The notes under the pieces were generated by a model that was not told the DNA's origin, made no database searches, and saw only the letters and a program-made list of their open reading frames with translations. A stretch of 64,000 nt of DNA, taken from Zygnema circumcarinatum SAG 698-1b. Lineage: Eukaryota; Plantae; Zygnematophyceae. This document shows positions 12,745-60,600 of the stretch, piece by piece. Each line of letters starts with the position of its first letter. Positions within the stretch are counted from its first letter, which is position 1. The position numbers and the translations under genes were made by a program. The stretch is from the NCBI GenBank assembly GCA_037447605.1, contig CM074815.1, positions 806,001 to 870,000 on the forward strand. Direction: 5' to 3'.

Positions 12745-12859
12745 ACGCAAGTCGGACGGCGTCGAGGTCACGCGCGGCGCGGCGTGGTGTTCCGGGTGGG
12801 CGCGTTGTCGTTTTGGGCGGGGAATGGCCGGAGTGCCGGACAGGGGGTCGGGCCGACTA

Positions 12860-13570
12860 GGTCGATATATCGGAGGGCGTGGATGCAGGTCAATATATCG
12901 GAGGGCGTGGATGCAGGTCAATATATCGGAGGGCGTGGATGCAGGTCAATATATCGGAGGGCGTGGATGCAGGTCAATATATCGGAGGGCGTGGATGCAG
13001 GTCAATATATCGGAGGGTGTGGATGCATGTCAATATATCGGAGGGTGTGGATGCAGGTCAATACATCGTAGGGTGTGGATGCAGGTCAATATATCGTAGG
13101 GTGTGGATGCAGGTCAATATATCGGAGGGCGTGGATGCAGGTCAATATATCGGAGGGCGTGGATGCAGGTCAATATATCGGAGGGCGTGGATGCAGGTCA
13201 ATATATCGGAGAGCGTGGATGCAGGTCGATAAATCGGAGGGCGTTGATGCACGTAGATATATCGGAGGGCGTGGATGCAGGTCGATATATAGGAGGGCGG
13301 TGATGCAGGTCAATATATCGGAGGGCGTGGATGCAGGTCAATACATCGGAGAGCGTGGATGCAGGTCGATAAATCGGAGGGCGTTGATGCACGTAGATAT
13401 ATCGGAGGGCGTGGATGCAGTTCGATATATCGGATGGCGTGGATGTGGTCAATATATCGGACGACCTGGATGCAGGTCAATATATTGGACGGCCTGGATG
13501 CAGGTAGATATATTGGACGGCCTGGATGCAGTAGATATATCGGACGGCCTGGATGCAGGTCGATATACGG
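12860..13570. repeat. 28-bp tandem minisatellite, about 25 copies (GGTCAATATATCGGAGGGCGTGGATGCA)
   Basis: Head-to-tail units without spacers, decaying toward the right end. Confidence 0.97.
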
Positions 13571-38660: not shown

Positions 38661-39032
38661 GATATCGTACGGCTCGGGGGAGAGGCCCGGGGCGGGCGCC
38701 GGCGAGTGGCGACGTGGCCCGCTGGGGGACCTCAGCTCGCGCCCGCCCGCCCGCGCGCCACGAGGTTGGGCCGCCCGGGGGACGCGGGCGGGCGGGCGGG
38801 CGGATGTCGGCGCTTGGCGCCAAAAGGTATGAGAATCTGAGAGATACGGTACTGTCCGTGTCGCCTAGCGGGGAGGGCCGATCATTGATATGTACGGACA
38901 AAAGAGGCAGATTATTGACTTTTGTGTCCGCAAGTCGTGTCTGTAGGTCGGTGGTAGACAGACGGGGTGTTGGCGGAAGGGATAAAGGTGTGGTACCGTT
39001 TTGTCGTGATGTTCGGACAGTGGAGTCGGCCA

Positions 39033-39216: not shown

Positions 39217-39859
39217 TGTAGCACAAGATAAGTGGGGTTAAAGAGGCTGTTGAGCTAGTTCTTGAGGTCTTGTCTGACCCACTGGCGGCGTCCGTCTTTG
39301 GCCCGATGAAGGGTTGGGTTGGTTACGTGGGTGCGCTGCGGCATAGAGCGGGGATCCGGAGATTCAGAAGTACTTGTAGCGTGGCAGTAGGGATCACGAA
39401 GATGTTCCCACTTAGGCCGAGAATTTTGGACCCGATCATAAGGGGAAACCTTTCCTTGGGGGCTCTCCTCCCCTGTCCTCCCCTCGGCTAGTCTCTTAGC
39501 TAGGCTTCTAGTTATCATTGGTCATTGGGAGGAATGTAAGGCAGGATATCACAAGATGGTAGCTTGGCATAGTGACAGCAAAGGGGAAACAAGACTCAAC
39601 TTAGATAAAGGTTGTATTTTGGAAAGTCACCCCAGCCAGCGGTTGGCTGGGGATTGTCATTACAATGAAAGTATCTTCTCACTGAAATCTTTGTCAGGCT
39701 GGGCTGAATGGGACGTCTAAATGCTATCAACAAGAAGACTCTTTCTCTCTCTCTCTCTCTCTCTCTATCTATGGCATGGAACTCTCTCTGTAGCGAAACG
39801 CTACAGTCACCCCAAGGGGGAAGGGTTACTTAGAGCCCGGCGTGGCTTTATGTTTCCAT

Positions 39860-39939
39860 CCAATGCGGTACCTAATGGTTAGGGCATCGGATACCCTATA
39901 GGACGACGGAGGTCCTAGGTTCGAACTGTAAGAACTGGT
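39860..39939 (+). other. tRNA-derived segment (A box/B box) inside the 5' LTR of element X
   Basis: TACCTAATGGTTAGGGCA D-arm/A box, GAGGTCCTAGGTTCGAAC T-arm/B box and a vestigial acceptor stem CCAATGC/GAACTGG. Confidence 0.65.
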
Positions 39940-39971
39940 TCACCCGTGGGGCCACCAGGTAGGCTTGGTGG

Positions 39972-41292
39972 TGTTGAAGCAGGGGTCTGCTCCCCACTTC
40001 CGGCGCCACCTCGGGTGTCGCCCTCCATTGGAACTTGAGTTCCCACGGATGAAGACATTCAAACACTCAAAGCTCTATCTTACTTCACTCATGACCAACG
40101 GCAGAATGAAGCTACAAGACAACACGGAAATCAAGATGAGAGAGTGTTAGGAGAAACACAGCTCTAAAACCACTTCTAGTGAACCCTCGTCCCCACAATG
40201 AAGTTCTCCCACCACTTCAAGGTCCCTCTTACTCACTACCTCACGACACAAGTGTATGCAGCCTAGGAGCACAAGCAGCAGGTTCTGAGTAAGACCCGAG
40301 ACTATGACAGAGTAGTGTAGGTGGATTGCTTCCCATAGTAAAACTACGCACTATATAATATGGCGTATATGACGTGGCGCATCATCAGCGTCCCACATGT
40401 GACTCCATACAGCTGTGATCTGGGTGGCGCACTCAAAGTGGCAACTCCACTCGGTCCCTCGTAAACCTGCGGCGGCGCCAACCTCGCTCTGTGGGTCGTG
40501 CATCCATCGTGCAGTTTCACCGTTCAGCCAGCGCTGCTCGGCAGGTGTGACCCGCGACATCTCGCATTACAGCTGGATGGCAGTCACATCGCAAGTGGTT
40601 GCGATGGCCTGCCAACCGCGCCAATCTCTTCATGTCGTTAGCAGCAGCTTCCAGCTCCGCGTCGCGTCAGGTCGCAGCGTCCGGCCGCTCCGCATCATCT
40701 TCGCGAGTCCGCTAATCGTCGATCGTCATCTTCCACTTGCTGTATCAGCGAGCCCAGTGGGCACGCTCGTCGTACTGCGCACTCGCGGCGCACTCACCAA
40801 AGTCAGAGCACCGACATTACTAGATCTAAGAGCACTACGCCTGGCCAGTCTCATGTCGAGTCAGTACCGCGCACTTAGTATATGCCATACAATGTCTAAC
40901 TATCATACACTAACACTAGCAATCCCCCTCTTGGGACTCAGTTCTTCATGGGCCCTAGCTCAATCAACTCACTGCTCACTAGTAGTGTCTCCCCGCTGAC
41001 CCCTTTAGTCAACATGTCTGCAGCCTGCTCTTTTGTTCCTACAAACTTCACCACTATCATCCCTTCCTCTACCAACTCTCGCACATAATGATATTGCACC
41101 CTAATGTGCTTGGTTCTTTTATGGAACACAGGGTTTTCCATAAGAGCTATAGATGACTGGTTGTCCGTAAAAAGAGTCAATGGTGTTTGTGGTCGCTTAC
41201 ATTCATCAAAGAAATGTTGGAACCACATCCCTGCCTGGCCTGCATGGCACAGCTCCCCATGTCCTCTCCTTCGAGTCTGGCAGCGCCACCGA
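39972..41292 (-). mobile_element. Ty1/Copia 3' end (3' LTR 39972-40914, PPT, RNase H)
   Basis: LTR TGTTG...TAACA; minus-strand PPT AAGAGGGGGA; RNase H LFTDNQSSIAL..FHKRTKHIRVQYHYVRE; truncated by the N gap. Confidence 0.88.
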
Positions 41293-41392
41293 NNNNNNNN
41301 NNNNNNNNNNNNNNNNNNNNNNNNNNNNNNNNNNNNNNNNNNNNNNNNNNNNNNNNNNNNNNNNNNNNNNNNNNNNNNNNNNNNNNNNNNNN
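41293..41392. other. Assembly gap (100 N)
   Basis: Run of N. Confidence 0.99.
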
Positions 41393-44052
41393 ATTTGAGA
41401 ATTTTTCACCCAAATTTTCCTCGAAAAATCGTCGAGGAAGGTGATGAAGTAGCGAGCTCCTCCACTCGTTGCCGGTGTCACGGGTCCACACAAATCGGTA
41501 TGAACCAATTCCAGTTTCTCTTGCGCGTGAAATGACTCCTCTCCACTCCTCGAGAAAGGTCTCCTGTGCGCTTTCCCCTCTACACACTCTTTGCAAAAGA
41601 AGCTAGCTCATATACCGAGCTAAATGCGGCGTCTAACCATGGACCTTTAGCAGGCATTTGCGGTCCCTGTAGTTTAGATGACCAGAGTACACGATGCGAA
41701 TTTCTGCCCTGGGTTAGAAGCCATACCTCATCTTCTTCTCTCCTATAATGAAGGTAATACAGGCCTCCCTTCTCATACCCCTCAAACAGCCGCTTCCCCG
41801 ACTCTAGGTGAGTAGCTACACAAGACTTCTCCTTAAAGGTGACTTCGTACCCCCTCTTACATACTTATTGCTGAGACATGAAGTTACATTTGTGAGAGTA
41901 TGAAATGCATAGATACGGCAACTCTTCTCTTTCTAGCTTCTTCCGTAGATGATAGAGCGTCTCGAGGATCATCTTACTACACCTCCTTTTATGCTTATGC
42001 TCCTCTCGATTTGTCAGGTGAGCAGTCACGGTCCTCTCAAGGTGTCCCGGCGTAGAACATTAAACATGCGCCACATGTCGCGTGGAGGCGCCCGGTCCCG
42101 ATCAGCCATGTGGCCTTCAGATCAGTAACCTGGATCTTCTGCTCATCGAGAATGTTAGAGTCCCGGCATGAGATTCGTCTCAGCGCCACTTTCTGCAATC
42201 TGTGCTCTTGTGGCCTCGCTATACATTTAAAGCGATTCCCTTGAATCCCTTCTTGGATGGCGATGCTCCTCCGCGATCTTGGGGTATTTGTTCTTGCTTA
42301 ACGAGTCGGCGAAGTGGCGATCTTCGCCTTACGTGTAACCGCCGCGGCTCGTAGTCGTTCCCCCATGATGCATCTCGGCGCACCTCCTCGTCCGAACTTG
42401 TAGGTAGTCTTGGCGCCGACACGCTTCTCCCTGCAGTGCCTCTCAACGTCTTGGGCAGTGTTCTCCTCATAGTCCTTACGTTTCCCTTTGCTCAGGTCAT
42501 CCGGTGTTACGTTAGAAACGATCTGAAAGTATGACTGCTACATCCATCGGCCGGGCAGTCCCAGAAGCTGGCTGATTTTGAGTCTCCCTCTAACGGTTTT
42601 TACTTATAAATCTCTCATTAGAGTATCAAATCTGACCATATATTCACTCGCTTCTCTTGAGGACATCTTCATTTTCCCAATTTGCTGATGTAAAGGCTAG
42701 CTATCGTTCGTTATCCTTCGTCATACATCTCCTCTAGCATCTCCACATAGCATGTGAAGTCTCTTAAGGTCATCTGACATGTGGAAGAGGGACTTCCCCT
42801 ACAGCTCATGGCGATGCGGGTGAGGGCGGTAATGCATGGCCGGGTCACTCCGTGGCGGCGGCCGGGGCTCGGCTGGCTCGCGTGGCTCCACCGGCTGCGG
42901 TGCCTTGATAGTGCGTCGGCGTACTGACAGCCCTTGCCCACGGCGAGGAGCGGCCCGCCATCTCCACCCCTTGTGGTCGAACCATGAACATTTGGGATCT
43001 TTGGGCTTCCGTGGTCTTCACCGCCACCTTGAGCTCGTACCACTTGTTGAAGCGGGGTTTTGCTCCCGCCGGCGCCACCTTGGGTGTAAGCCACTCCCAT
43101 TGGAACTTGAGTTCCCCGCGGACGAACATTCAAACACTCAAAGCTTCCCCATCTTGCCAACTCGCCATGTAACAACGAGAATGAAGCTACAAGACAAGCA
43201 CGGTGAAATCCGCAATGAGAGTGTTAGGCTTCGCGGCTCTAAAACTCCTTATAATACAAAGCTGTCTTCCCCTGATGAAGTTCTCCCTTCTTCAGGTCCT
43301 CCTACATCACTACCTCCACGACACACACAAGTGTGGCGGCCTAGCGGCAGCGGGAGACGCAGAGGCCAAGACCGAGACTATGACAAAGTAGTGTGGGTGA
43401 GTTGCACTTCCCCATAATAAAACTATGCACTATATAATATGGCGTGTCCGTGGCGTGACACACATGTCGCGTCGCGTCATAAATACAAGCTATACTGGCC
43501 CGAGTGCAGTACTTAGGCACTGAATAGCGGCAAACTGCGCATATGCAAACCTTCTGGCGGCCTTGACCTAGTTCTTATTAAAACAAATTACACTGTCTCA
43601 AATGCAGTATACAGCGTTTCGCCCGGCGCTCCTTCGGTCTTAGCCCGCTGGCAAACACCTGCGGCGCGTACACTCGAACTGGCGGACCCGGCGCGGTGGT
43701 CCACGTGGCGCATTCGGTTGCGCGCGGAAATATCTTATATGCGTTTCAGCAACTTTGCGCTCGCGTTTGGCGCCCGTAGCGCTGATGATCAAAGTTAACG
43801 TAGCGTCAGTACTTCGCGAATCCGTGGTATATAAAACCCGATCAAAGTTGTCGTCCAGTTCTCGCGCACGTATTATTATTGTAGCGTCAATCGGCCTTCG
43901 TTGGTACTCCGTATTTCGCGAGCACTCCACGAGTCGCCGCTGCAGGCATTCCTAAATCTGGGCACTACGCTGCTTGAGATCTCATGTTCTACAAGCGAGT
44001 ACCACAACAAGTTGAGTGTGTGCCATCTGATAATAACTATCATACACTAACA
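41393..44052 (-). mobile_element. Ty1/Copia 5' half (5' LTR ~43045-44052, PBS, gag, protease, integrase)
   Basis: Integrase VHTDLCGP..ARYFITFLDDFSRKIWV; degenerate Met-tRNA PBS next to the LTR; LTR homologous to 39972-40914. Confidence 0.85.
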
Positions 44053-47000
44053 ACGGTAGCGTTCGTCCGTACAATTAAGTGCAGTTGAATACGGACGGTA
44101 CTGTCCGGGCTGCGGCGCGTAGGATCGGCAGGTGTTTTTAGCGACGTCTGGCGTACGTCGCGGCGCGTGAATCGTTGGCGTTAGATGCGTTATTGCACCT
44201 CGACCCGTTCGGGTGGGGAGGAGGAACCGTGGCGGTCTGCCATTGGGCCGACCCTTGCTTCCCGATCACTCCATCTTTGGTAGGGTTAGAGCCCGGAAGC
44301 GTGAAGTGAATTTATTTGTCGTGACCCAATCCATGCCGGCATTAGGTTACACCCACTCTTGACTGCGCCACCCTCTGAAACTCTCTCTCTCTCTCGCTGA
44401 ACTCTGAGTGCTGGTGTGTTGTTCCGCGCAGGCTGAAGAAGAGGCGGTTTTCAGTCGTTACATTTGGTATCAGAGCCGCGTTGCGGCCTTCTCTATCGCG
44501 AGAACCTCGTGGGTCATGGTGACCACTCGCCAGTGGTTGGGTCAAACGAAGGGTTACCTTCTTGCGACCAACTGTCCCCCCCTCCAGTGGGTAAGCTTTG
44601 CTTACCCAGCACTTAGAGGAGCCGCATACCGTGTGTATGAGGGCCTCTCTGATGAGATTGGGGACGATTGGGATAAGTTCAGAGATGAACTTATCAAACA
44701 CTTTGGGGCCTTGGATCCCGGCTTGGAGCAGGGATAAATTCGGAACATGGTGCAAGCCGTGGGTGTGAAAGCGGTTTAGAGACTGCGTCGAGAAGTATTA
44801 CCTCAAATCACCACTCACAAGCTGAGCGAGGCTGAGTTGCTTTCACCGGGGAATGGCTTGAAGCCACACACGAGAGCTAGAACTTAACCCGCGGACTCTA
44901 CAAAATTGGGACCCGACTCACGAGTTGTACTTTGTCGCGGCCATTAGGTTGGACACACGCCCTGCGGGCGATGCCGGGCCACTTCCGGAAAGCCCAGCAG
45001 GGGTTGAAGCTTTGGTCGTGGAAGGCGGGACCCTCGGCTCTGCTAAGATGGCGAGGGAAAAAGAACAAGCGAGCGTAGGAAGTATTTGCCCAGCCACCTT
45101 TGCACGGCGCGAAGTTGCTCGGAGGAAATGGAGAGATGCAGCGGAGAACAAAAGTATTTCCTTCTTATGAGGAGAGCTAAGGCCGGGATTTTGCCCTCTG
45201 AACACCAAAAAGAACAAAAGGGGCAAGAGAGTAGGAAAACCCCAACCCACCGGCCGAGCAGGGGGAATTGCAGATTCTTTGGTGGACATCTTTAGGCTTC
45301 AAGGGGGAGGAATGGGGAACGCCATCAGGATAGGGGAGCTATTGTTTGCTTTAGAACCTCGGACATTCTTAATTTGGTGGGCAAGCCTTTGGGAGTGCAA
45401 GATCTCTTTGTGTTTGATGTACTTCCTTTTTCCATTTCTCTTTCCCCTGCCACTGTAGTGACTCCTTCTGAGTTTATGGTTGTGGTGATGCATAGTCGAT
45501 GGAATGTGTTTATCCTGATATTTATGAGTGGCGATGTCTTGGTGGTGTGCACCCATGGAGGCCATGCATGTCATGCGGGGCGCATCACTATCCCTTAGAG
45601 GCTACATGTCTTCAGTTCCTCGGCACTTGGCGGTTCACCCACTTTTCCAAGCATAGCTGGCGGTTGGTAGCTTGATTGAGAACTTCTAAGGATTGGTGGA
45701 AAGGATCCACCGATTCCTTTGGTTAGGTCCCCACACACGCAATTGTGGAGGGCGGCTGCGTCCTCGGCAACCCATATAGTCGATCTATGTTCCACCTTGC
45801 CCATTGTGCCATGACCTTCGTCGGGTCAGCCGATGGCCACCTAGCAATTATACTGCTAGATACTGGGGCAGATGCTAACTTTGTTAGTTACGCATTCACC
45901 GAGAATTTGGGTTGACCGCCAGATCCCCATTGAAAGTGTTGACACTTTTGAGGGGATGGGCACTTAAGGAGCGAGACCTGCAGTAGGCGGCGTCACACTT
46001 TAAAGATCAAGCTCAATGCTATAAAGGCGGAGTCCAAGTGTCTTACGACTCATCTGGCCCACAGGCGTGTTATTTTGGGGAGTGCTTAGTTAGCGAGGTG
46101 AGAGCCCAATTGGACTTTCAGATCCCATGTTAAATGCACTTGCAGTGGTGCGGGCAGTTACCCTGCACTGGCAGCTCCACATCCTGTATCAAGCAACTGA
46201 CCTCCTTATCTGCAGCAGCGTACAATGGGCAAGGTGATGAGGATTGCACCTTATTCATGGTGCATGTTATGGCAACCAGGATGTTCGCGACGAAGATCGA
46301 GGAGTGGCGATCACACCTACTAGCGTGCTCTCCCTTTGTTTCACTCCCGATTCGACCTCTGTTGGATGAATTGAGGATGTCTTCACGATGATCTTCGAAG
46401 GTTGCCCCGTGAGGGTGGGGCACACAATCCCTCTCTTGAGCACGAGCAAAAGCATGGCGACGATCCTCGGTTAGTCGAAAGAAATGAGGGGAGATGTGGC
46501 GGTTGTAACTGCGTGACAAGATAGAACTTGATCGAAGCCCTTTGGAAACCCATCTTATTCGTTGGGAAAAAGATGGCTGCGTTGAGGATATTGCATTGAT
46601 TATGTACTCCAGCAAGATCCTTGATAAGAAATCGATTTGCTTTACGTATGATGATCTGGTGGATGGTCTTGGCGCAAGTGTTTACATCACTTGATCTTGC
46701 TCAGGGGTACCATCAGATCCGCGTCACAGAAGCTGATGTGCCAAAAACTGCGTTCCGGACGCCGATTGGTCATTTTCAATATAAAGTGTTGCCCTTTGGA
46801 TTGTCTTATGATCCGGCCACTTTCCAGGCTGTGATGAACGAGATGTTCATCGTGGCATGGGCGAGTTTGTTTTGGTTTACCTCGTTGATATCCTTGTCTT
46901 GGTAAGGCGGGAGGAGAAAATCTTGAACTGCGTTAGGAAAGTGTTTGAGACCACGAAGCAATTTATGCCAGAAGGGAAGAATTAATAGAAGCTTCATGCA

Positions 47001-47587
47001 GCAGCGAGTTGCTTTATCTTAGGCATATCCTCGATGGGGTCTTGACTGATCTGCCAAAGTTCGGCGGTAGAAACTTGGGCGCCACCGACTGACTTGCATC
47101 AGTTGCGATCATTCTTGGGATTTGCAAATTATTTTCGTAAGTTCATCCAAGGGTTTAGTAAGTTGGTTACTCCCTTGACTAATTTGACACGTTCCGGTGT
47201 CCCCTTTGTATGGACCCCTGAGTGCCACGAAGCATTTGAGGGTGTCCGCCATGCACTTGTTACCGCACCCACTCTCCGTTTAGCGGACCCGTCCAAACCT
47301 TATGAAGTGGTTTGTGATGCTTCGGGGTTGCCAGCAGGTGCCGTCTTGTTTCAAGATGGTCAACCTACAGTATGAAAGCGCCAATAGATCGGCGCCCAGC
47401 TATTACGCAGCGAGCGAGGCTGCTTGTAGTGGTCCGCGCCACGAGACATGGCGGTGCTATTTAGAGGCAAAAGCGGTCACAACTGATCCCCTTGACCACG
47501 CCCGGCCAGCGTTTCTCTCTACCCGCGAGACCACATCACAGAACGCACTTGTGATACGGGGATTCCCTCAAAGAGTTTGGCCTTAAT

Positions 47588-50500
47588 TGTTAGTATTGAG
47601 TGTGCTATAGTTAGACATTATGCGGGTTTCCTGCTTTATTGTTAGTAGTCCTGATTGAAACATGAGATACCTTTAGTAGTGTTCTGGGGAAATACGGTCG
47701 GGCCAAAATATGGGGTGGCCGGTACGCTTTTGGCCTTGAGGAGGATGCCGATTGATAGCCGGCGAGGTAGCGTCAGAACCCTTAGATGCTTGATCCGCCC
47801 GGTGTGGCAATTAACTACGGAGGAGACGAGTGGCAACCATGAGACAAGTGTGGCTGGCCGGAAATCACGGCAACGGAGGTATTTCATCGCGGGCGAAGCG
47901 CGGAAATATTATGCAGTGCAGAAACAGGCATCTTAGCCAGCAGCGTGAGCAGCGCTGTCTGAGGCGAAGCTGGCGGAAGTGCGCTTCCGAAGCGGGCGAC
48001 AAGGTTCAGATGAAGCGGCCAGGCTATGCAGACGACGACTAGATGCGTCTTTGGCGTAGGTTTCGCGAAAGACACATAAAGGCGGATGTTGAAGCAGCGT
48101 GCACAGGCTGGCTGAGCGCGCCAGGGCGGCCGTGACGTGACATCGGTCAACAAGGAAGATGTCACGTAACCGCGGCCATGGCGGTATATAGAGTTTAACT
48201 TTGTTATGAAAAGGATAACCACATTAGACTCGTAGTCCATTGACTTATTACGTGCACATAGGTGTTCTTTGGTACGCCACCTTGTGTCGCCAAGGTAGTG
48301 TAGTAAGGGAAGTAGCTGAGTGAGAGGAAAGGGAACTTCATGTGGGTGACATTCTTATTATAAAAGGAGTTTTAGAGCGTGAGCTTTCCTACTCCTATAC
48401 TCTCACCGATGTGTGATTTCAGCTATTGCTGCGTACGTTCATTCACAATGAGTTATGGGCTACATGGTAGAAGTGAGATAGAGTGAGAGTGAAGATGTCT
48501 TCATGGTGGGAACCAGGTTCCAATGGAGGCGACGAGGTGGCCGCGGGGCAGCGAGCGAATCGGGGCACCCAGCAAGTGGTATGAGCCAATGGTGGCGGCG
48601 GGGACCCGTGAGAGTTCAGCATTCCCGCGTGCGGCGGTCGAGGAAGCGCAAGGGTGGAGATGGCGGTGGTTCCCCGCTTTGCTCGTGGAGCAAGGCTGTT
48701 GGGAGTGCATCAACGCGGACACCATCCAAGGCACGGTGCTTTCTGGGAGGGAGCCGCGGCGGCGTCGGGAGCCACGAAGTGGCCTTTCGCCGAGATGGAG
48801 TGCAAGGACAACAGCGCTCCGCAGGATGCGTCACATGAGTGTGAGAAGTCCTTAAGTCCATGCATGCCAGTCTCAAGACCTCACATGCTATGTGGAGGTG
48901 CTTAGAAGAAGATGTATGATGTAAGGATAGCGTCACGATAGTGAGTCTTTGCAGCGGCTTGGGAAGATGAAGATGACCCGGATGGCGAGTGAATATATGA
49001 GTGAGGAGTTTGATACCTTGATGGAGAGAGGTTCATAGCTCTGGCAGATTAAAGTGACCATAAAGTCGGCCACGCTCTTAGGGGATTGACCTCTAGATTT
49101 GATGTAGCGTCCAGCGTGGCTTAGAATTTGTCCTAACGGGCACAAATGACCCTTGAGCAGAGTGGCGGAGGATCAAGGAGGAGGACACCGTCAAGACACG
49201 GGAGCACCGAGGAGAAGGTGCATGGCGCACTCCTGACGGGGACCGAGAAGGAGGTGCGCCCGAGGGAGTAGGACCCGAGGAGGAGCACTGCGGGAGGCGT
49301 GCTACGTGTGGCTTGGGCAGCCACTACCGGCGGTTGCTACAAGAACAAGAATTACAAGATAGGGAGGCCTTGTGACATTGACAGAAGAAGGAGAAAGAAA
49401 GGCTTCAAGGGATCACCAACTTCCAAGTGCAAGAAGCGAGGTCCTACAAGAGCACCGAATCACGGGAAGGTCGAATGAGAGACCAATCTGATGATGGTGA
49501 GAAAGGCCGAAGGTTCGGCATTTGGGAAGATCGGGTTCGGTCACGAAGCGGCCACAGTTGATCGACTTCGGGCGCTTCCCACACACATGTGTGGCGACAA
49601 GCAGATGTTCTCCACGTTGGACACGCTGGGAGAAGACTCGATCTGTTCACTCGGCAACCGGAGAGGGAGTGACAGTCACGAAGGGTGGAGTAGTCAAGAT
49701 GATTCTCGGAGACGGCTCTGTCATCTACGAAGAGGAGAGGGAGGAGCGTTTGTGTATCGGTGATGTACTCCACACCCCCGAGCTGAAACAGAACTTCATG
49801 TCTGTTAGCCAGGTGTGTAAGAGGGGGTACGAGATCACGTTCAAGGAGAAGTCTTGGTAAGCTCTCACTTGCTTGATGGCAGGGGAGGCTTGGCCCCATT
49901 TGAGGGGTATAGAAGGGAGGCACATGTGCTCTTCATTATAGAAGGGCCAGAGATGAAGATGTGATAGGCACGTAGGCTGAAACTGCCATAAATCTCAGCA
50001 TCGTGAGCTTGGACATCTTAACCGCCGGGGGTTGCAGCGACTTTAACTTCTATAGGGGCTGGTGCGTGGGTTGGAAAGTAGATGTCGTGGAGGAAGGGCT
50101 TTCGGCTTTTAGGTGTGTAGGGAAGGCATGAAGCCATTGCGAGGCGGAGAGAGGCGTACCATGCACGGGGGCGGAGTTGGTTCACACACCGACCTTTGTG
50201 GCCCATTGACACGGCAGCAGAGTGGAGGGCTGGGAGCCCACTTCATCACTTTCTCTCGATGATTTTTAGAGGAAAATTTGGGTGAAAATTCTCAAGAACA
50301 AGTCACGAGGCTTTGGGCCTTGGTGGCAGACTCAGATGGAGGCGAGAAGCTGGGGCGGCCGAAGACTCTGGGCTCCAGACTGGCGGAGGGAGTTCAAGTC
50401 GAAGGAGTTTGGCAGAGTACCTCCAAGGCTACAAGTGGAATTAGGCATGAAATTCTCTGCTCTACTCCCCTCAAAGTAATGGGCTGGCGGGTAAATAGGA

Positions 50501-53500
50501 CGTTGGGGGACATGGCGCTGACCATGAACATAGATTCCCCCTTCCCGACTGGCACACTGGGGAGGCGGTGATGACGCAACACCTTGGAATAGATGCCCAT
50601 CTTATTGCTCCAGGACGAGTTCACGAGGAGGTGTGGTTTGGGGAGAAAGCCTGGTTTCCCTGAAGGCTTTGGGAGCTGGCGATGCGGCAGTCTTGAAGAA
50701 GCGAAGACGAAGAGGAAGTTTGACCGCGAGCCGTTGAAGGATATGTTCGGCTACAACATGGACAGTCGCACCTACAGGATTTGGAACCCGCGAGCGAAGG
50801 AGGTGCAGAGCTCGAGGGACATCACGGTGGACGAGAAAGGGGCGGTGACACGGCTAGGTGAGACCCAGCCCCAAAAGGCAGGATTGGAGATTGTGTATGA
50901 GGACGTGGAGACCAGCGGAGAAGGCGTTGAAGCCTCTCGAGGTCCCGACTTTGGAAGTCGGCATATCTTGGGAGGAAGCGAAGGAGGCGGCTTTCGAGGA
51001 GGAGGCTTGATACGGTTGTCGGCGGGCGGGAAGTCGGAAACGAGAGTACATAGCGAGGAAGCGAGGAATGCGAGAGCGGCCCACTACACACTCACATCAG
51101 ATAGAAGGCTTCGGTCAAAGCGGCCTGCTGCACGGGCGAGTGTTCACGAGACTTGGATATGGCGAGAGGCGATGAGAGGCAGAGATACACTCCGGGATTT
51201 GTTCATTTTCTTCAACTCGAGGTAGGAAGCGCAGAGGCATGAGGAACAACCGATGTGGTGAGGAAGGCGAGCGATCTGACGTCATGGTCTTTGTGCAAGA
51301 GAGTGCTACGGACTCTGGCGACCTCGCGGGGAGTTGCCCCTTTGCTACATGATCAGCGAGCACTTAAACGCCGAGGAGGCTACGCGTGCAAATTGATGGA
51401 AGCGAAGTGGCGGCAGCGGTCGATAGCGGTGGAATAATTACGATAGAAGAGCGGGGCGTGGCGGCGGAGAAGCTGCCCAGAAGGGAAGGAGAGCCATTGG
51501 ATGCAAGTGGGTGTTCAAGGTGAAGCGAAAGGCGGACGGGAGTGTCGACCGTTACAAGGCGCGGCTGGTGGCGAAGGGCTACAGCCAGAAGTACGGAATC
51601 GACTACACGGAGACTTTCGCCCCGGTGGTGAAGTTTAACTCCCTCCGTGCCCTAATCTCGATCGCAGCTGCTGAGGGGATGCATGTCCATCAGTTAGATA
51701 TCAAGACCGCGTTTCTGTACGGAGATCTCGCTGAGGAGATCTACATGGAGCAGCCCGAAGGGAAAGTTGTCCCGGGGCAGGAGCATCTCGTCTGTCGCCT
51801 AGTGAAGAGTACGTACGAATTTGAAGCGGGCACCGGGGATCGATGCGGAAGATTGGCGTCTTACCGAGCAGCAGATTTCTTGCGCTTTGAGGCGGATCAT
51901 TAGTCTACCGACAGGAGGAGGAGATCTCATATCGTTGGGATCACGTGGATGACCTCATTATGGTGAGTCTCTCAGCACGGGAAGAATCAATGATCACGAA
52001 GAAGCTTTGCAGCTAACTTCCAAATGTCGGATCTGGGGAGCCTTGATATCTCACAGGGATCTGGCAATTTTGTGAGAGGCGGGGCGAATGCATTTCCCTA
52101 AGTTAGAAAGAAGTACGCCCTTGGATGTACTAGCGAGTTCAATATGGAGGAGTGGGGCCGTGCCCGGTCCAGATGGAGATGTGTGGTGTCGAATATGGAG
52201 CCAGCGGCAGTTGTGAGTGCAGTACATGTCTGAGTCTTGCGTCTGAGATCTCACTATCGGAGGCCAATGTACCCTAATGATTGAGTACCCGGCCCAGGAC
52301 TTGGCCGAGGCATGGCTGGCCGCCGTCGGTTCATGGAGAATCCCGGCCACCCCGAGCATTGCAGGAGGCGTAAGCGAATCTTTGGTTGTCACGAGAGGAC
52401 CACAGATGCAGACCGTTACGAGAAGGCGAATAAGTGATCCAGATACACCGACTCGGCGGGGAGAGTAGCGTGGAACCACTCCTTGTCGACCTCCGGATTT
52501 GTTTACACGAGCGGTGGAGGCGATCTCATGGGCTGAAACTCACGAGGATTGGGTTAGTTGTCTGTACCCAGAATTACATGGGAGCATGTCGCAGCGGCGA
52601 AGGAGGGAGTTTGGTTCAACATTTCTTTGATGAGTGTAAGGGGCACAGCGTCCCACTTGACTTTTGTTCACGCGGATGTCCGATTAGATCCACTTAACTC
52701 TTTGGGCAGCCCTGTGTTTTTCATAAAGGACAAAAGCATTAGAGTACAATACCATTATGTGCGAGAATTAGTAGAGGAGGGGATGATTGTTGTGAAGTTC
52801 GTGGGGACGAAGGAGCAGGCTGCGGATATGTTGACTAAAGGAGTTGGTGGTGAGGCGCTCTTAGTGAATACCATGGGAGCTTCGTGAGGCTAGGAGCCCG
52901 TGAGGAAGCTGAGGCCCAGAGAGGATTGTTGAGTGTTAGTGTCTTTATAGTTAGACATTATGCGGGTTCACACTAACATTGTTGTGGTCCTCGGTTGGCT
53001 GTAGAGATACGCTAGTAATTGATTTCTAGGAAATAAGTCCGGGCCAGTAGCCGGTGGCGCGTCGCTTTGAGCGCGGAGGAGGATGGCCGGTGATGTCAGT
53101 GAACGTCCGGACCTGGTGCGGTCGTGAGGCTCTGTGGCGAGTCAACTTCTGAGGAGGAGCCGAGAGTCGGCGGCCCGCAGCGGACAGGAATGTGGCTGGC
53201 GAAATGCGGCAGCGGAGATTTAAATGGCGGGCGGCGAATAATGTGCAGATGCCTTGTAGAAACAGGCATCTACAGGCGGCGTGAACCCAGCCTCCTGAGA
53301 CGAAGCGTGGAGATTACTGCCTTTCGAAACGGGCGACAAATTCGAGATGGTAGCCAGGCTATGCAGACATTTGACTAGAGTGTCTTTGGCGTAGGATTTC
53401 ACTGAAAGACATAAAAGCCCCAGATGTTGAAGCAGCGATACACAGCTCTTGAGCGCGAGGCAGCGTGGCGTGACATGTGCTGAGAAATATCATGCTTTCA

Positions 53501-53922
53501 CGGCCATAGCGGTATATAAGGTTTAACTTTATTTATGAAGGATAACCACATTGAACTCGTAGTCGTGACTTATTACATTACTTTGCACAAATGTTCTTTG
53601 GGGCACATACAGCACGTGTCATAGGTGAGTGAGTAAGGGAGAAGTAGCTAGTGAAGGGGAGAACTTCATGTGGGTGACATTCTTGTATAAAAAGGAGTTT
53701 TAGAAGTGAGGCTCTCTCACATGCTCTCTCAAATTGTGTGATTTCCAGCTGTGCTGCGTCCTGCATTCATTGCACATGAGTTATGGGCTATAGGTGAAGT
53801 GAGATAGAAATTGAGAGAGAGTGAAGATATGTCTTCATAGAGTGGGAGCAGGAGTTCAATGGAGAGGCTGACAGCGAGGTGGCGCCCGAGGAGAAGCGGC
53901 CCGAGCAGTCCAGACTCCAACA
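47588..53922 (+). mobile_element. Full-length Ty1/Copia inserted in the chromovirus pol
   Basis: LTRs ~47588-48574 and ~52927-53922; PBS at 48577; gag, protease, integrase (VHTDLCGP), RT KWVFKVKRKADGSVDRYKARLVAKGYSQKYGIDY, RNase H IRVQYHYVRELV. Confidence 0.88.
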
Positions 53923-54025
53923 CCAGTAGATTACATGTCGGCTGGAAGAATTTGATGTAGCAGAACCCAGCGGCGAGGCGGCCTGGGCACATCTTGCGGA
54001 TGGTGGCGGCTCGTGGAAACTCGGT

Positions 54026-55014
54026 GTTGGTGGTGGTGTTGGCAGTGTGCTTTATAGTTGGGCATTATGCGGGTTCACTAACATTGTTGTAGTCCTCAGT
54101 TAGGAAACATGAGATACGCTAGTAGTGTTCCTAGGAAATGCAGTGGGCCAAATGTCGATTAGCCATTACGCTTTTCAGCGAACGCGGAGGATAGCCGGTG
54201 ATGTGGCGGAACAGCGTCAGAGACCCTTAGTGCGGTCAGCGAATTTCAGCCGGCGGAGTGTCTGGAGGAAGACCGAGGTCAGCGGCCACCAGCGGACAAG
54301 TGTAACAGCGGAATCACGCAGCGGGAGATTTCGTCAGCGGGCCAGCGGGCTCAATAGTATGCAGTCTGCCTTGAGAGAAACGGAACATGCTGGCAGCGGC
54401 GGGCAGCGTGCAGGGCGAAGCGGCGGGGGATTCTAGCGGCGAGCGGGCGACAAACTCCGAGATGGCCCGGAAGCTATGCGGGCGGCGGCTAGGTAAGTCT
54501 TTGGCGTAGGTTTGCGAAAAGCCCCTTAAAGGCGGCCCCGGATGTTGAGCAGCGTACAGGCATTGAAGCGCGCATGAGGGCGGCGTGGCGTGACATCAGT
54601 CAACAGAAGATGTCACGTAACACGGCCATGGCGGTATATAGGGTTTAGCTTTTGTTATGAAGGATAGCCACATTGAACTCTTGTAGTCAAGTGACTTATT
54701 ACGTACACTTTCGTGTTGCTGGGCTGCCACTTGTGTATGCAAGGTAGTAGTAGAGGGAGAGAAAGTAGCTAGTGAGAGGAGAAACTTCATGTGGGTGACA
54801 TTCTTATTATAAAGGAGTTTTAGAGCCGTGAGCTTTCTCACATACTCTCTAGTGTGTGTGATTTCATTTGTGCTGCGTCTAGCGTTCATTACGTGAGTTA
54901 TAGGCTATGAGTGAAGTGAGATAGAGTGAAAGTGAAGATGTCTTCATCCGGTGGAACGGAGTTCCAATGGGCGACCTTGAGTGGCCGGGAAGCGGCAGCA
55001 GTCCAGAACTCAAC
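54026..55014 (+). mobile_element. Solo LTR of the same Copia family inside the chromovirus pol
   Basis: Homologous along its length to the LTRs at 47588 and 52927; flanked on both sides by Gypsy pol sequence. Confidence 0.8.
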
Positions 55015-57563
55015 GATTGGTGGAAGCGAGATAGCGAAGGTGAGGGGCGGCCCAGCCAGGAGTCTCTAGTCTCAGTATGCTGTCATAGATCCCACTCCAC
55101 GGTGGCCTTGATCAGCCTCCTTCTCTCTACGTCTCGAGGCAGAATATTCAGGAGAGGCTATCTGCGAGTGATCACTTTGTTCTGAATGGCAAAGGTAATA
55201 GGTATAAGGACAAGAAGTGGTAATAAAGGCAGATTTTTAGTACCACGGCGAGCAGTTGAGTAGTACTTGAGGCGGGAGGCTTTGTCTGGCGGCTCGATGC
55301 AGGTGAGCTACATGATCCTCAGGTACCGAGGAGTCACATGGGAGTGCAAAACACGTGAGGCCTTTGCTCAGAGAGTTCTGGTGGCCTGGACTCTCGAGGG
55401 ATGTGAAAGCGTATGTACTCGCTTGTCCAACTTGTCAGCGAAACAAACCCCGCACTGGCAGGATCCCTGGCCAGCTGCAACCCCTCACACCTCCTTTTCG
55501 GAAATGGGACAGTGTGGGTATGGACTTGATCACAGATCTTCCTGTGACACCTCGGGGGCATGACTCCATCCTCGTCTTTGTCGATCGGCTCAGCAAGATG
55601 GTGCATTTAGCACCAACTACTAAGCCCGCTGGGGCCGACGAGATAGCACGCTTGTATGTTGACAAAGTGTGGAGCGGCATGGTCTTGATCGAGAACTTGT
55701 GTCGGCGATCTAATTCACGGTATTTTTTGGGCGGAAGTGCTCAAAATCGTTGGGACCAAGCGGCGTTGAGTCTGACTTTCCACCCCTTAAGCCGTGGCGG
55801 GGCGAGCGGGTGAGCGGATCACGGAGGATTACCTCGGCATTATATGGGACCTACGGATGGGTGGGACGGCTGCTCCCGGTGGGTGAGTATGCCATCAATA
55901 ATGCTTACAAGGAATCCATTGCTACCACCCCTTTCGTCCTGAACATTGGTCAGCACCCTCTAAATCCCCTGCAACCAAGGGATCAGCCCCCTGATCCGTG
56001 GAACATGGGCGTCCACAGAACCCCCGATCCTTGGAAGCTGAGAGGAACTGATGGGACTCAACCTCCCGCAGTCAGATCTTTTGTCCGGTAATATGCGAGG
56101 CCTTTGCGAGAGGAGCACGGCGGAACCTGCTAGCGGCCCGGTCGCGACAAAGGCCTATGCTGACGATCCGCGTACCCAACTCACACCTTGATGAGGCGTG
56201 AGGTGTTCTAGCTGATGCGGCGAACTTGAGACTCAAAGCTTATGGCGGAACACGTAAGCTGTGGCCCCGTTTCATAGGACCTTTTAAAGTCGTGAAGCGA
56301 ATCAATGATGTCGCTTACCGGTTGGCTTTACCAGCTCATATGAAGGTGCATCCGGTCTTTCATGTGGGAGGTTGTTAAAGGCCTACCGTAGCGATGGGAG
56401 GATCCAGCCACCTCCCCCACCAGTGGAACTTGAAAGTGAACTTGAGTATGAAGTTGAAACCATTCAAGCCCACGATATTGTGAGCAAGAAGATTGATCTT
56501 CACGTCCGCGAATACCTGCGTGAAATGAATTTGGAGCTGTAAGTTTGAACATAGCATAGGAAGCCGAGGCAACAGCAATTGCAGGCTCATCCGCTTATAC
56601 TTTGGGAAGCGCGAGGCCGCGGGGAGAAGCTGACGAGGCGGCGGGGAAGTCGTGTGTAACCTTTCTGATCACCCATGGGAGAGTACTTAGGGCAGCGCTC
56701 CGTCCCACAAATACTCTCACCCGAGCGCGGGCGGTGGCCAAACGTCGGGGACCACAGAGACGGGGAAGGGTCACAGGATGAACCTGCGAAGGTTGCAAGA
56801 GGTTGATGCAGCGTATGACTATCTTGAGAACTTATATATGTATCGGCGTGTAGATGTGGTCGAGGATCCGCGGAGTCCCGGCCACATGCCTTCGTTTTGA
56901 GCACGTAACCGTCGTCCGTACAATTACGGGTCCGCAGATTGATGCGGGCAATTTGCCGATCGAATCAGCGCGCGCGCGGGATCAGCGTATTGCACAGCGT
57001 CTGTGGCCGCTTGGCTCATGGCCAGCGCCGCCAGGCGAATGCGGTGGCGTTCATGGGTATACACCTCGACCATTCAGGTGAGGAGAGGTTTCTACCGGCG
57101 ATCTGCCATTGGACGACCACTGCTTCCAATCCTCCATCTTTGGTAGGAGGTTCCAGCGGGAGAAGCGTAAAGAGGCTGAGGGTGGCTGTCATCACCCAAC
57201 AAGCGTGCCGGCATTCAGTTTGCACCCTTGTTGCGCCACCGCCGAGCGGCTCTCTCTCGGCGAACTCGGAGTCTTTGACCGAGTGTTATTCAGCGGTGAA
57301 GGAGTTAGATTCGGCGGCCTTACATTGACACTGGCCGTCCCCGCGCAACTCGGAAAGGGACTTGACCGGGATTATCGCAAAGCCCTCCCGGTTATCACGT
57401 AGACTTCGACGCGTGCCGTTGAAACTACGAGCTGCCTTTACTACCCCACACACGTGAACGAGGGCGTTCACATTCTCATAGGAGGGGAGTAATGTAGCGA
57501 AACGCTACAGTCACCCCAAGGGGGAAGGGTTACTTAAGGCCCGGCGTGGCTTTATGTTTCCAT

Positions 57564-57643
57564 CCAATGCGGTACCTAATGGTTAGGGCATCGGATACCC
57601 TATAGGACGACGGAGGTCCTAGGTTCGAACCGTAAGAACTGGT
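57564..57643 (+). other. tRNA-derived segment inside the 3' LTR of element X
   Basis: Same sequence as 39860-39939 with one substitution in the T stem. Confidence 0.65.
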
Positions 57644-60600
57644 TCACCCGTGGGGCCACCAGGTAGGCTTGGTGGGCCCCACATCAACCTTTAACGTACC
57701 CTCCTCTGTGTGGAAGAGGATTGGGACTTAACGGAACCACGGGACCAATCCGGTCCCGGATGTCAGACGCGGCCGAGATCCCCAGGCCAGCGTTTTAGGT
57801 CAGGTACAATTCACAGTTGCCGGGTTAGTGGTGAGGACGAGTGGCAGAATGAACAGCGGCAGCGTGATAGGATCGACCGTGCAGCGGCGTGCGGTGGCGC
57901 GTTGAAGGCGCGCTGGAATGCGGTGGCGTTACGTCACATTATACACCTCGGCATTGGTCGAGAGAGAGAGGAACGTGTGATACGCCATTGGGCGGCCACT
58001 TCCCGATCACTCCATCTTTGGTAGGAGGAGGTTGATTGGGGAAGCGTAAAGTAAAAGGTGGCTGTGCGGCCCAGCAACGTACCGGCATTCAGTTGCACCC
58101 GCGAGCTGCACGCCACCCTCTGAAAACTCTCTCTCTCTCTCTTCTTTGAACTCACGAGAGTCTTGGAATTGTGTTGTTGTTCAGCATTTGAAGAAGAAGC
58201 GGTTTCGATCGTTACACTCTCCTCTCTCTCACACTTAGCATCTGTTCTTTGGGCGAAGAGGAAGAAGAAGAACAAGACAACAAACCACACAGCAATGCAA
58301 AAGCCACTAAGCCCGGCACTAAAAGACAAACTAGCATCACTACATCCCATCTACTTTATGCCCGGCGGTAGATCACGAGTCTTAGCAGTGGCAGTCTGAT
58401 TGGCCAACTGCCCGAGGCTGGCCGGCTACTTGGAGCCTTATGATAGGTCAACAAATGACAATCCCGGCATTTTAGCGCTTCGAGGTGCGCCTAGCTGAAT
58501 GGTGTGTGCTGCGTTCATTGGAGCACGCCAACACTGGCGCCGCCTTCGCATTTTCCGTCACCGGCAACTCACGGATTATGCGGTCCGTGACACTGAATAT
58601 GAATATGTCAAGTACAACTGAGCGAGCGTGAGATCCGTGGAAACGCGCTCCGTTACGCTACATACATATACATGCGAAACAAAGCATACGCCCTTACTTG
58701 AGCTGCTTAATGAACAAAGAAGCGGGGATGAGACAATGATAGCGTGGGCGAGGCGCGTGAGGCGGAGTAGGGGAGTAAGGAGAAGCTTCGCGTACATTGG
58801 CAATGGGGGGAGTATTGGCGGGGCCCAGGAGGTGGATGAGGGTAAGACAAATTCAAAATCGAAAGGCTCACGGCCAATTTGGCCGAAATGGTGGCCGGCG
58901 GCAAAAGTGGCGGGGAGGAATGAGGAAATGGACCAATGAGGAGTGGAGTCATGGCGGTACGGGATGGCCGGTGCTGGCAGCTTCAGCGGGGGAGAACCGC
59001 AGGGCGTGGCGGCACGGAAAATACGTCAGTGTGACGCGCCCGGCGCGGCGTTTCCGCAGAGTCGGGAGGCCCTCCCGAAATGATGATGGCCCAACACGGG
59101 ATCTCCGGCGGACGACACAAATGAAGAGGGGCCCAACCCGCGGGGAAAACCCCGTTGGTCGGTTTGGCAAGATTCACGGGCAAATGAGCTGACGTGGCGC
59201 GGCGGGGTGGGGCGGGAGAAGCGGCCTTTGTCGGCGTCTCCCAAAGTGGGGTGAGTTGTGCGTCTGTCTTGGCGTTGAGGTGGTGGGGAGGAGGCCATGG
59301 AATCTAGGGTTTGGAAGCGCGAGGGCAGGCTGAAGCTAAGGCGACCGGGCTCAGGAGGCCAGCGTCGCCGTAGAAGAGAGGGGCTCGGCGAGAGAGAGGA
59401 GGTCAAAGGGAATGCGGGGCTTCACGGCCATAGAGGAGCTTCGTAGGGAGAAGCCCGGTGGAGGTGAAGCGAGGAGGTGAGTATGCGTGAAGGCGGGGAG
59501 GGATGACCTGGCGTTCACCTCTCGGCTACAGCGCGGCAGCGAGCGCCGCGCATCGCTTGACATACGTATGGTACGTTACGCGGCGGCTACGCGAGGGTAG
59601 GGAGGGCTAGGAATTAAGGTGAACTGATGCGGAATCACATGAAGCAGCAAACGCCCCCTTGTATTCGGTGCCATTGTCAGAGTGGACAGAGTAGGGGAGA
59701 GAGTGGCGGTGAATTATGGCCGTCAGGAGGCGAGCAGAGTGGATGGAATGCTTAGATTCTGTCGCGTGAACTTCCACCCACTTGGTGTATCTGTCCACGG
59801 CTAGGAAGACCCGAATGTAGCCAGAGGGGGTGTCGAGCTGGGGGATAGAAAAGGTGTCAATGTTCCAATCTTCGGCGACGCCTCGTATGGGGATCTCACC
59901 CATCTCCGGGGGTTAGCGGTCGGGGAAGCGGGCGGCTTGCCCGGCGTTAGCGGCGGAGTGCGGTTTTAGATGTAGGCTCACGCCGCGCGCGGGGGCGGGC
60001 CAATATGCGCGCTCTGCCGGCGGGGCGACCATCTTCTTACGGCCAGGTGGAATCCGCGGTGAGAATGCGTGGTGACATCAAGAATCTCCATGCGTTCGTT
60101 GGGGAGCGAGGGGAAGGCTAGAGGGAGTATAGAATGTCCTTCATCATCAGTTCGGCCTTGGCGGAGCGAGCCAGAGCCTCTCGGTGTCAAGTGATAAGGG
60201 GGGCTTATGTCTTGAGGTCATGGCGTGGCCTTGAGAAGGGAAAGTCTGAATGGGCGTCATTGTAGCCCAGGGAAGAAATAAGGGAGGAAGGAAAGGAGGC
60301 GTGGCCATCATATACATAGAGTTCCCGCGGATCCGCATGGGGGTGGCCGTGGGTGAAGTCAGGGTCCTGCCAGCGATGGAGGGTGGTGGCCCGTGGCCGG
60401 AATATCGATCAGCCCATCTGCGAATATGACATCATGCAGGTCTTGATCGGCAATAAAAATCTCAATGGGAAGATGCTCAGGGTTCAAGAGGGTGGGTGGA
60501 GGGATGGGTTCATGAACGGCCGGATCGTGACAGAGGAGGGGAGCCGAAGGATTTCGACTGAGGCCGTCTGCATTGCCGTGGCTCCGTCCGGGACGGTGAG

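Follow-up and report, generated by a model that had tools for sequence, protein, structure and literature searches.

The locus under study raises the question of whether the LTR of a retroelement in Zygnema circumcarinatum carries the remains of a tRNA gene and, if so, whether these remains still serve Pol III. Within the 64,000-nt stretch of DNA that was analyzed, hereafter referred to as the window, a 183-nt sequence occurs twice. An earlier note had described its two copies as belonging to both LTRs of an element and as housing a segment with the geometry of a tRNA. The explanation that best accounts for the observations overall, and which we consider reasonably probable, is that the 183-nt repeat constitutes the 5′ head of an LTR from a Ty3/gypsy-lineage family and that the relic block within it is a passenger.

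The direct repeat and the complete LTR

The two copies of the repeat, 39789-39971 and 57493-57675, lie in the same orientation, start at the same first base, and are 98.4% identical (blastn E 2e-86), with the three mismatches between them located at repeat positions 45, 46, and 139. The first 25 nt of the LTR head are found at these two places only in the window, with 0 occurrences expected by chance. Only these two near-identical head-bearing copies were available in the window; a search of the metagenome contigs with 22 nt of the LTR head gave 0 matches, and a protein search with an ORF inside the complete LTR, undertaken for further copies, found none. The strings quoted in the earlier note were read from the sequence at the positions assigned to them. 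The features of the repeat and of the LTRs considered here are as follows.

39789-39971, plus strand: LTR head, copy 1, truncated at 39971/39972 to a stump of the LTR that copy 2 opens
57493-57675, plus strand: LTR head, copy 2, comprising a hairpin, a spacer, the tRNA-like block, and a terminal hairpin (repeat family D2)
57493-57509, and also 39789-39805, plus strand: terminal hairpin TGTAGCG-AAA-CGCTACA, the first 17 nt of the LTR, which forms in the MFE fold
57493-58216, plus strand: LTR B, complete, 724 nt, TGTAGCG...CGTTACA, with TG..CA ends, beginning 3 nt after a polypurine tract
57480-57489, plus strand: AGGAGGGGAG, the polypurine tract as read from the sequence, ending 3 nt before LTR B
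57325-57479, plus strand: what is left of the interior of the head-bearing element, non-coding, extending from LTR A (which ends at 57324) to the polypurine tract
56580-57324 (start approximate), plus strand: LTR A, a related Ty3/gypsy 3′ LTR without head or block
43466-44462 (start approximate), plus strand: LTR C, a related Ty3/gypsy 5′ LTR without head or block
57938-57949, plus strand: TATA-like motif, ATTATACACCTC, from the three-LTR alignment, columns ∼790-815

As can be seen, copy 2 opens a whole LTR (57493-58216), but copy 1 is a 183-nt stump that abuts an LTR of another kind, such that the expression "both LTRs" in the earlier note holds for the former copy and not for the latter. That the repeat is retroelement LTR sequence, as had also been claimed, is borne out by the polypurine tract, the TG..CA ends, and the homology of the 3′ part to gypsy LTRs. 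Specifically, over its 3′ 230-300 nt LTR B shows ∼71% identity with both LTR C (44239-44462, E 2e-15) and LTR A (57037-57227, E 1e-11). LTR C is followed by an iMet primer-binding site, TGGTATCAGAGC (44465-44476), and then by gag, an aspartic-protease motif, RVT_1, and RT_RNaseH_2 (Pfam). LTR A is located downstream of an Integrase_H2C2 ORF (55355-55813) and of a pol stop at 56540, and is preceded by a similar polypurine-tract context, CATAGGAAG. Because its 3′ part is homologous to LTRs with gag-pol neighbors and because it displays the anatomy of an LTR, LTR B belongs to the Ty3/gypsy LTR lineage. It is the 3′ LTR, or a solo LTR, of the head-bearing family.

The part common to the three LTRs, ∼230-400 nt at the 3′ end, consists of the TATA-like motif, R-U5, and an end that reads ...GTTACA or ...CTTACA, whereas the U3 parts of LTRs A and C upstream of the TATA-like motif cannot be aligned with that of LTR B. 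No homologs of the head or of the block were found in LTR A or LTR C, a point that counts against the explanation favored here. The TATA-like motif, which is conserved in LTR A (57057-57072) and LTR C (44190-44205), is a putative Pol II core promoter. Given that this motif and all that lies downstream of it are shared by the three LTRs, the tRNA-like block would be positioned in the distal U3, ∼310 nt upstream of the motif, and the earlier placement of the block in U3 thus stands.

The feature in the window is one complete LTR and one stump, with no coding capacity of its own. LTR A and LTR B are separated by 168 nt (57325-57492), including the polypurine tract and a TAA, and it is these 168 non-coding nucleotides that are left upstream of LTR B; no gag-pol of its own, enclosed between two LTRs of its own, was found. 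The internal remnant at 57325-57479 contains neither an ORF nor a primer-binding-site-like TGG motif matching the iMet site of 44465, and there is no TGG-type primer-binding site 3′ of LTR B. In the neighboring gypsy element, no chromodomain was detected by Pfam at E<=10 in the 77-aa C-terminal ORF (56309-56539), a weak negative in that this copy is degraded. The head-bearing family is not called a chromovirus for the reason that no chromodomain is detectable in this degraded neighbor.

Anatomy of the tRNA-like block

The tRNA-like block is ∼80 nt in length and is positioned about 70-150 nt into the LTR. Its two copies are organized as follows.

39860-39939, plus strand: tRNA-like block, copy 1, with the D-arm/A-box 20-mer at 39871-39890 and the B box, GGTTCGAAC, at 39918-39926
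57564-57643, plus strand: tRNA-like block, copy 2, with the 20-mer, CCTAATGGTTAGGGCATCGG, at 57575-57594 and the B box, GGTTCGAAC(C), at 57622-57630

The D-arm/A-box part and the variable-loop/T-arm/B-box part have kept the right order and the right strand, a surplus of 6 nt separates the two, and pairing has been lost in all four stems. The A box matches TRGCY at four of its five positions (TACCT), and both the YGG (as TGG) and the GGTTC elements are present; the bases equivalent to T8 and G10 differ from those in the SINE heads described below. The B box of copy 2 is exact, GGTTCGAACC, and in copy 1 a T is found in place of the C at the C61-equivalent position, 39927. A TTTATG/CAA context is situated just upstream of the block. 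Folding of the copy 2 head as RNA gave a z of -2.9, and the MFE structure is composed of other hairpins and contains no cloverleaf.

Probable tRNA ancestry of the block

Programs and models that rely on tRNA structure did not recognize the block. ARAGORN reported no tRNA at its default, 95%, or 90% thresholds. Its call at 80% was rejected as noise, in that it concerned copy 2 only and the window gives 37 such matches. With Rfam model RF00005, there was no match to the block at E<=10 on either 401 nt or 101 nt of sequence, and the Rfam searches of the window at the gathering threshold and of the block at E<=10 returned only chance matches (whalefall-1 and mir-58). A cloverleaf covariance model was built from 17 E. 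coli class-I tRNAs and run without filters; the block is not listed at E<=10, which is to say that it scores below 6.8 bits. By this lack of a cloverleaf signal the block does not qualify as a tRNA gene or pseudogene of the RF00005 type, the positive controls having scored 26-33 bits.

A sequence-only tRNA profile, referred to as R2 and built from the same 17 E. coli class-I tRNAs, does respond to the block. In a search of the window on both strands, copy 2 was matched at 57581-57630 with 9.4 bits (E 0.073) and copy 1 at 39877-39925 with 8.5 bits (E 0.14); these E-values are roughly calibrated and, taken alone, borderline. The match runs from model position 18, in the GG of the D-loop, to position 60, in the T-loop, with one 6-nt insertion. 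Among the matches from the two strands of the entire window, the two copies of the block take 2nd and 3rd place. The presence of an R2 signal versus the absence of a cloverleaf signal is in accord with the earlier observation that the loop (box) sequence is kept better than the stems.

The 20-mer CCTAATGGTTAGGGCATCGG was found as an exact match in 15 metagenome contigs, and in all 15 it is located in the D-arm/5′ anticodon stem of a tRNA-derived SINE head. The 20-mer was picked from the block after the fact, and ∼1 random match is expected in a collection of that size. Given that the 15 matches all fall at the same tRNA position and that a B box comes next at close to the expected distance, we judge from the sequences that they are not due to chance. 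The SINE heads themselves score 12-33 bits with the cloverleaf model, with 11 of the 15 exceeding 15 bits, and 16-32 bits with the profile. With RF00005, values of 30.4 and 26.1 bits were obtained for SINE heads, which serve as positive controls for the negative results with the block. The block is much more decayed than typical SINE heads.

In the LTR the B box starts 27 nt after the 20-mer, versus 21 nt in the SINE heads, and on the same strand. This D-arm-to-B-box distance, longer by 6 nt, agrees with the 6-nt insertion in the R2 match. In a MAFFT alignment without the 6-nt gap the B boxes are not lined up; in the R2 alignment they are. No other homology between the SINE contigs and the LTR was found. 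Additionally, GGAGGTCCTAGGTTCGA is identical at 15 of its 17 bases to the variable-loop/T-arm piece of the Helenus-1_SMo LTR (PMC10886601 supplement), a comparison made by eye and with a 17-nt pattern.

On the basis of these sequence comparisons, the block is very probably the relic of a tRNA gene or of a SINE head. It could be argued that it is instead ordinary U3 sequence in which a B-box-like 9-mer and a D-loop-like motif happen to lie near one another. The region was, after all, picked by eye from 64 kb, no tRNA model gives a structural signal, and ARAGORN at relaxed thresholds calls as many as 37 "tRNAs" in the window. Such a chance resemblance would nevertheless have to include an exact 20-nt identity with the D-arm of 15 SINE heads together with a perfect B box near the right distance, and by our own arithmetic a B-box 8-mer would turn up 15-40 nt downstream of any chosen point with a probability of ∼4e-4. 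It would also have to place both copies 2nd and 3rd in the window by the sequence profile, and we regard it as very unlikely.

Certain details of the tRNA likeness described in the earlier note did not survive this analysis. The block does not have tRNA geometry with correct stem spacing, for ARAGORN, RF00005, and the cloverleaf model are all negative and the D-arm-to-B-box distance is 6 nt too long. The acceptor stem with five of seven positions paired was drawn in a register one base off that implied by the SINE heads. Infernal with RF00005 had been named among the checks on the proposal, and the result, no covariance-model signal, is formally the one that was to count against it; the sequence evidence, on the other hand, speaks for the tRNA ancestry that had been proposed.

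Relationship between the two copies

Whether the two heads derive from one insertion or from two depends upon what surrounds copy 1 and what lies between the copies. The relevant features are listed here.

39784-39788, unstranded: CTCTC left of copy 1, one half of a candidate 5-bp target-site duplication
39972-40380, minus strand: LTR of a degraded Copia element, designated K, which cuts copy 1; its apparent partner, ∼75% identical, is at 43046-43462
58217-58221, unstranded: second half of this candidate duplication, CTCTC to the right of LTR B

The homology of copy 1 to LTR B stops at 39971, and a Copia-type LTR terminus, TGTTGAAGC, starts at 39972; the stump abuts TGTTGAAG, the terminus of another LTR. 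LTR positions 184-724, which would follow copy 1, were not found anywhere in the window. The heads are 17.7 kb apart with a patchwork of 17.5 kb between them, and a single insertion extending from 39789 to 58216 would measure 18.4 kb. Copia element K encloses a 100-N assembly gap (41293-41392) and a minus-strand rve fragment (41393-41508, Pfam), with stop-ridden frames to the right of the gap. The interior also contains a gypsy element with its own LTRs as well as a degraded Copia pol surrounded by three more LTR-like repeats of ∼930 nt. The pol genes between the heads reside in elements with other LTRs and are full of stops. A protein search with a Copia RT ORF gave best matches of only 61-67% identity.

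Of the pentamers in the window, 0.24% are CTCTC, but 11 and 4 occurrences were counted in the flanking 200 nt, both flanks being CT-rich. Because of this local frequency, a match between the two flanks would have a probability of a few percent of arising by chance. To the left of copy 1, the only similarity to LTR 3′ ends resides in a (CT)n microsatellite.

It is possible, although we lean somewhat against it, that 39789-58216 represents one retroelement and that the two heads belong to its 5′ and 3′ LTRs. The common orientation, first base, and 98.4% identity of the copies are in keeping with such an arrangement, as are the polypurine tract before the 3′ copy and the identical CTCTC outside both ends, in flanks that are CT-rich as if they had once been contiguous. 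The CTCTC match, however, has odds of ∼2-5% of being fortuitous, neither a primer-binding site nor a gag-pol can be assigned to such an element, and the rest of its 5′ LTR is nowhere in the window. What lies between the heads is a minus-strand Copia element, a gypsy element with its own LTRs of unrelated U3, Copia pieces, and the 100-N gap, and these nested elements look much older than an LTR pair that is 1.6% diverged. Possible exits from this age paradox are inter-element recombination or a scaffold join giving mismatched LTR "pairs," gene conversion between the heads, or a young family having recently inserted twice.

By another reading, the 183-nt unit is a free-standing small element, either a SINE or the solo LTR of a Helenus-type TRIM, that was inserted twice. 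There is a hairpin at both ends of the unit, and the copies are far more alike than their surroundings. However, with flanks of CTCTC/TGTTG and AGTAA/GCCCC, neither copy has a target-site duplication around it; the tRNA-like part is found 70 nt into the unit instead of at the 5′ end; and there is no tail of the A-rich or LINE-like type. Furthermore, copy 2 starts right after a polypurine tract, continues into gypsy R-U5 homology, and ends with CA, and copy 1 ends at the terminus of another element. A free-standing unit is in our estimation most improbable, and the 183-nt repeat is taken in what follows as the head of a longer, gypsy-lineage LTR.

Comparison with known elements

The closest published parallel is provided by Helenus (TRIMp3), a group of TRIMs from fungi, animals, and one plant, Selaginella moellendorffii (Helenus-1_SMo), with tRNA-like sequence in their LTRs (Kojima, 2024; PMC10886601). 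Helenus elements are recognized by a box A (TRGCY ... YGG) and a box B (GGTTC) and are non-coding, 311-1263 bp in length, with two short LTRs, a primer-binding site, and a polypurine tract; those of plants and fungi are flanked by a 5-bp target-site duplication (PMC10886601). According to Kojima, "not a few LTRs" in Repbase have tRNA-like parts, the insertion of a SINE into an LTR is the proposed origin of Helenus, and autonomous partners are expected not to share LTR sequence with TRIMp3 (PMC10886601).

The LTR described here resembles Helenus in that a decayed tRNA-like stretch with A- and B-box remnants lies in an LTR, the defining boxes are found, and, as for most Helenus, no functional tRNA is predicted. 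It also has TG..CA LTR ends and a polypurine tract. The CTCTC pentamers would correspond to the 5-bp duplication of plant and fungal Helenus if 39789-58216 were one element, but both flanks are CT-rich. It differs in several respects. LTR B, at 724 nt, is longer than the 120-nt LTR of Helenus-1_SMo and has a 3′ part with homology to the LTRs of protein-coding Ty3/gypsy elements. It does not form a TRIM: there is no second complete LTR, no primer-binding site was found, and the heads are separated by 17.7 kb. Outside of the tRNA part, the LTR, its termini included, bears no relationship to that of Helenus-1_SMo, and the block in LTR B is more decayed and carries the 6-nt insertion. The earlier note had raised the prospect of a new tRNA-LTR family. 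As a kind, tRNA-bearing LTRs are already published as Helenus, with a plant member from Selaginella (PMC10886601), and LTR B is a further member of this published kind.

Cassandra TRIMs are similar in that they, too, contain a segment that stems from a small-RNA gene inside the LTR. That segment, however, is 5S rRNA sequence, a Pol III promoter, rather than a tRNA. In the passages of PMC10886601 that cite it, Cassandra is a short non-autonomous element of 565-860 bp with demonstrated Pol III transcripts, whereas the LTR in the window is long. The 5S rRNA sequence that marks Cassandra was matched neither over the window at the gathering threshold nor around the block at E<=10.

The heads of the SINE2 elements that contain the 20-mer, for example those of a CORE/MIR-like SINE (contigs L009 and L011-L022), agree with the block in the identity of the 20-mer and in the B box, GGTTCGAAC, that follows downstream in the same order and on the same strand. 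In the SINEs the head is at the 5′ end, scores as a tRNA (RF00005, 26-30 bits), and is succeeded by the SINE core. The block, in contrast, starts ∼70 nt inside the repeat, has no covariance score, and is accompanied by no SINE body or tail; target-site duplications are found at neither copy, and it does not qualify as a SINE2. The metagenome contigs with the 20-mer carry young invertebrate-type SINEs.

Transcription by Pol II or Pol III

One additional feature of LTR B bears on the polymerase that would transcribe it.

57793-57796, plus strand: TTTT, the only run of four or more T's on the plus strand of LTR B (located by script); 163 nt past the B box, it could act as a Pol III stop

A single insertion of a SINE or a tRNA into an ancestral LTR would have brought the block into the distal U3, much as Kojima has proposed for Helenus. 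Being part of the LTR, it is copied whenever the LTR is reverse transcribed. For an element with LTRs of this length, Pol II would probably produce the full-length RNA from the TATA-like motif ∼310 nt downstream. A Pol III transcript initiated from the relic, on the other hand, would be expected to meet the TTTT after ∼240 nt, would fail to reach the 3′ LTR, and would not be usable as a template. In light of a presumed Pol II start at the TATA-like motif and an early Pol III stop, the block in LTR B is most likely a passenger relic. Since the B box is preserved, with the C61 equivalent as well in copy 2, TFIIIC may still bind there, and at most a putative TFIIIC site might act as an enhancer or a boundary or give rise to a short RNA.

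The use of Pol III by the long LTR appears unlikely on these sequence features. The earlier note had raised the possibility that the element uses the block as a Pol III/TFIIIC module, whether to be transcribed, to be insulated, or to escape silencing. The exact B box of copy 2 and the better preservation of the loops than of the stems are consistent with it. The A-to-B spacing is ∼50 nt, a value inside the range tolerated by tRNA-type promoters. In Helenus, the conservation of the boxes is taken by Kojima as a sign of function (PMC10886601). The A box departs from TRGCY, however, with T8 and G10 equivalents unlike those of the SINE heads, the C61 of the B box is a T in copy 1, and the TTTT lies only 163 nt downstream. 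The length of the LTR and the conserved downstream TATA-like motif point to Pol II, which, per Kojima, autonomous partners must use (PMC10886601). A working module of this type is, in our view, improbable. Against the passenger reading, a functional site under selection would likewise be compatible with the intact B box, the TTTATG/CAA context, and copies that are 98% identical.

Significance

LTRs that harbor the relics of small-RNA genes blur the divide between SINE-type (Pol III) and LTR-type (Pol II) elements, and they inflate the counts of tRNA pseudogenes. The contribution of the present window is one truncated, non-coding instance together with quantitative tests of its tRNA likeness. 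It is conceivable, although we hold it to be doubtful, that in a gypsy LTR lineage of a non-flowering streptophyte a TFIIIC-competent, hairpin-headed relic has been kept in the distal U3 as a selected module, whether as a boundary, an enhancer, or the source of a short Pol III RNA, and that this lineage is the direct progenitor and helper of the Helenus-type TRIMs of the genome. LTR sequence would then be common to a TRIMp3 element and its autonomous partner, a situation that Kojima (2024) considered improbable. If the head should prove to be common to long gypsy LTRs and to miniature Helenus-type elements, the two would form a concrete autonomous/non-autonomous pair. Were this true, TRIMp3 would have been born by internal deletion of a long LTR, a point that was left open by the 2024 description.

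LTR heads and neighboring retroelements

The 183-nt direct repeat referred to as the LTR head, which is present as a stump in copy 1 and opens the 724-nt LTR B in copy 2, is closed by a second hairpin, CCACCAGG-TAGG-CTTGGTGG. This hairpin is positioned at 39951-39971 in copy 1, where it is adjoined exactly by the truncating Copia LTR, and at 57655-57675 in copy 2. Additional features of the window are as follows.

12747-13558, tandem array with a 28-nt unit, about 29 copies
41293-41392, assembly gap of 100 N within a minus-strand Copia element
47599-48533, LTR-like direct repeat of ~930 nt
52938-53862, second such repeat of ~930 nt
54044-54975, third such repeat of ~930 nt

The copies in the middle of the tandem array are 90-97% identical. 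The assembly gap is flanked on the left by the end of RNase H and on the right by the start of the integrase core, and thus at least 2 kb of Copia pol is missing. As a consequence, the spacing of the two LTR heads in the assembly may not represent the true distance.

A gypsy gag-pol region is bracketed by LTR C on the 5' side (43466-44462) and LTR A on the 3' side (56580-57324). These two LTRs can be aligned in the last ~180-400 nt only, with an identity of about 72%, and their U3 regions are unalignable; they do not, therefore, constitute a simple single-insertion pair. The gypsy pol has its RNase H at 47094-47375 and its integrase at 55355-55813, and these two parts are split from each other by a degraded Copia pol (Pol_BBD, SH3_retrovirus, and RVT_2; 49.5-51.9 kb), which is enclosed by the three ~930-nt repeats. 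The mutual identity of these repeats is only 71-73%.

Other tRNA-like sequences

The top match in the window to the cloverleaf model, a covariance model built from 17 E. coli class-I tRNAs and run unfiltered, was a mini tRNA-like sequence of 47 nt at 38854-38900 on the plus strand (15.3 bits, E 0.022); LTR-head copy 1 begins ∼890 nt downstream of it. This sequence is characterized by a perfect acceptor stem of 7 bp, a D-arm (GCCU...GGGC), and a short anticodon hairpin, and it lacks a T-arm. A perfect T-arm hairpin of the tRNA type, CGAGG-TTCGAAC-CCTCG, is located at 950-985, directly followed on its 3' side by a run of nine Ts. It gave a local match of 10.9 bits, and no complete tRNA was found around it in the covariance-model scan of the window.

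Metagenome contigs with tRNA-type heads

Metagenome contigs L009, L011-L014, L016, and L018-L022 carry a young SINE that has a tRNA head and a CORE/MIR-like body and whose copies are almost identical to one another, and two further tRNA-headed repeats occur among contigs L015/L017 and L008/L010. These contigs are AT-rich, with GC fractions of 0.36-0.44, and are probably of invertebrate origin. Their tRNA-type heads have an exact 20-mer in common with the plant-lineage LTR block, the ∼80-nt tRNA-like segment inside each LTR head.
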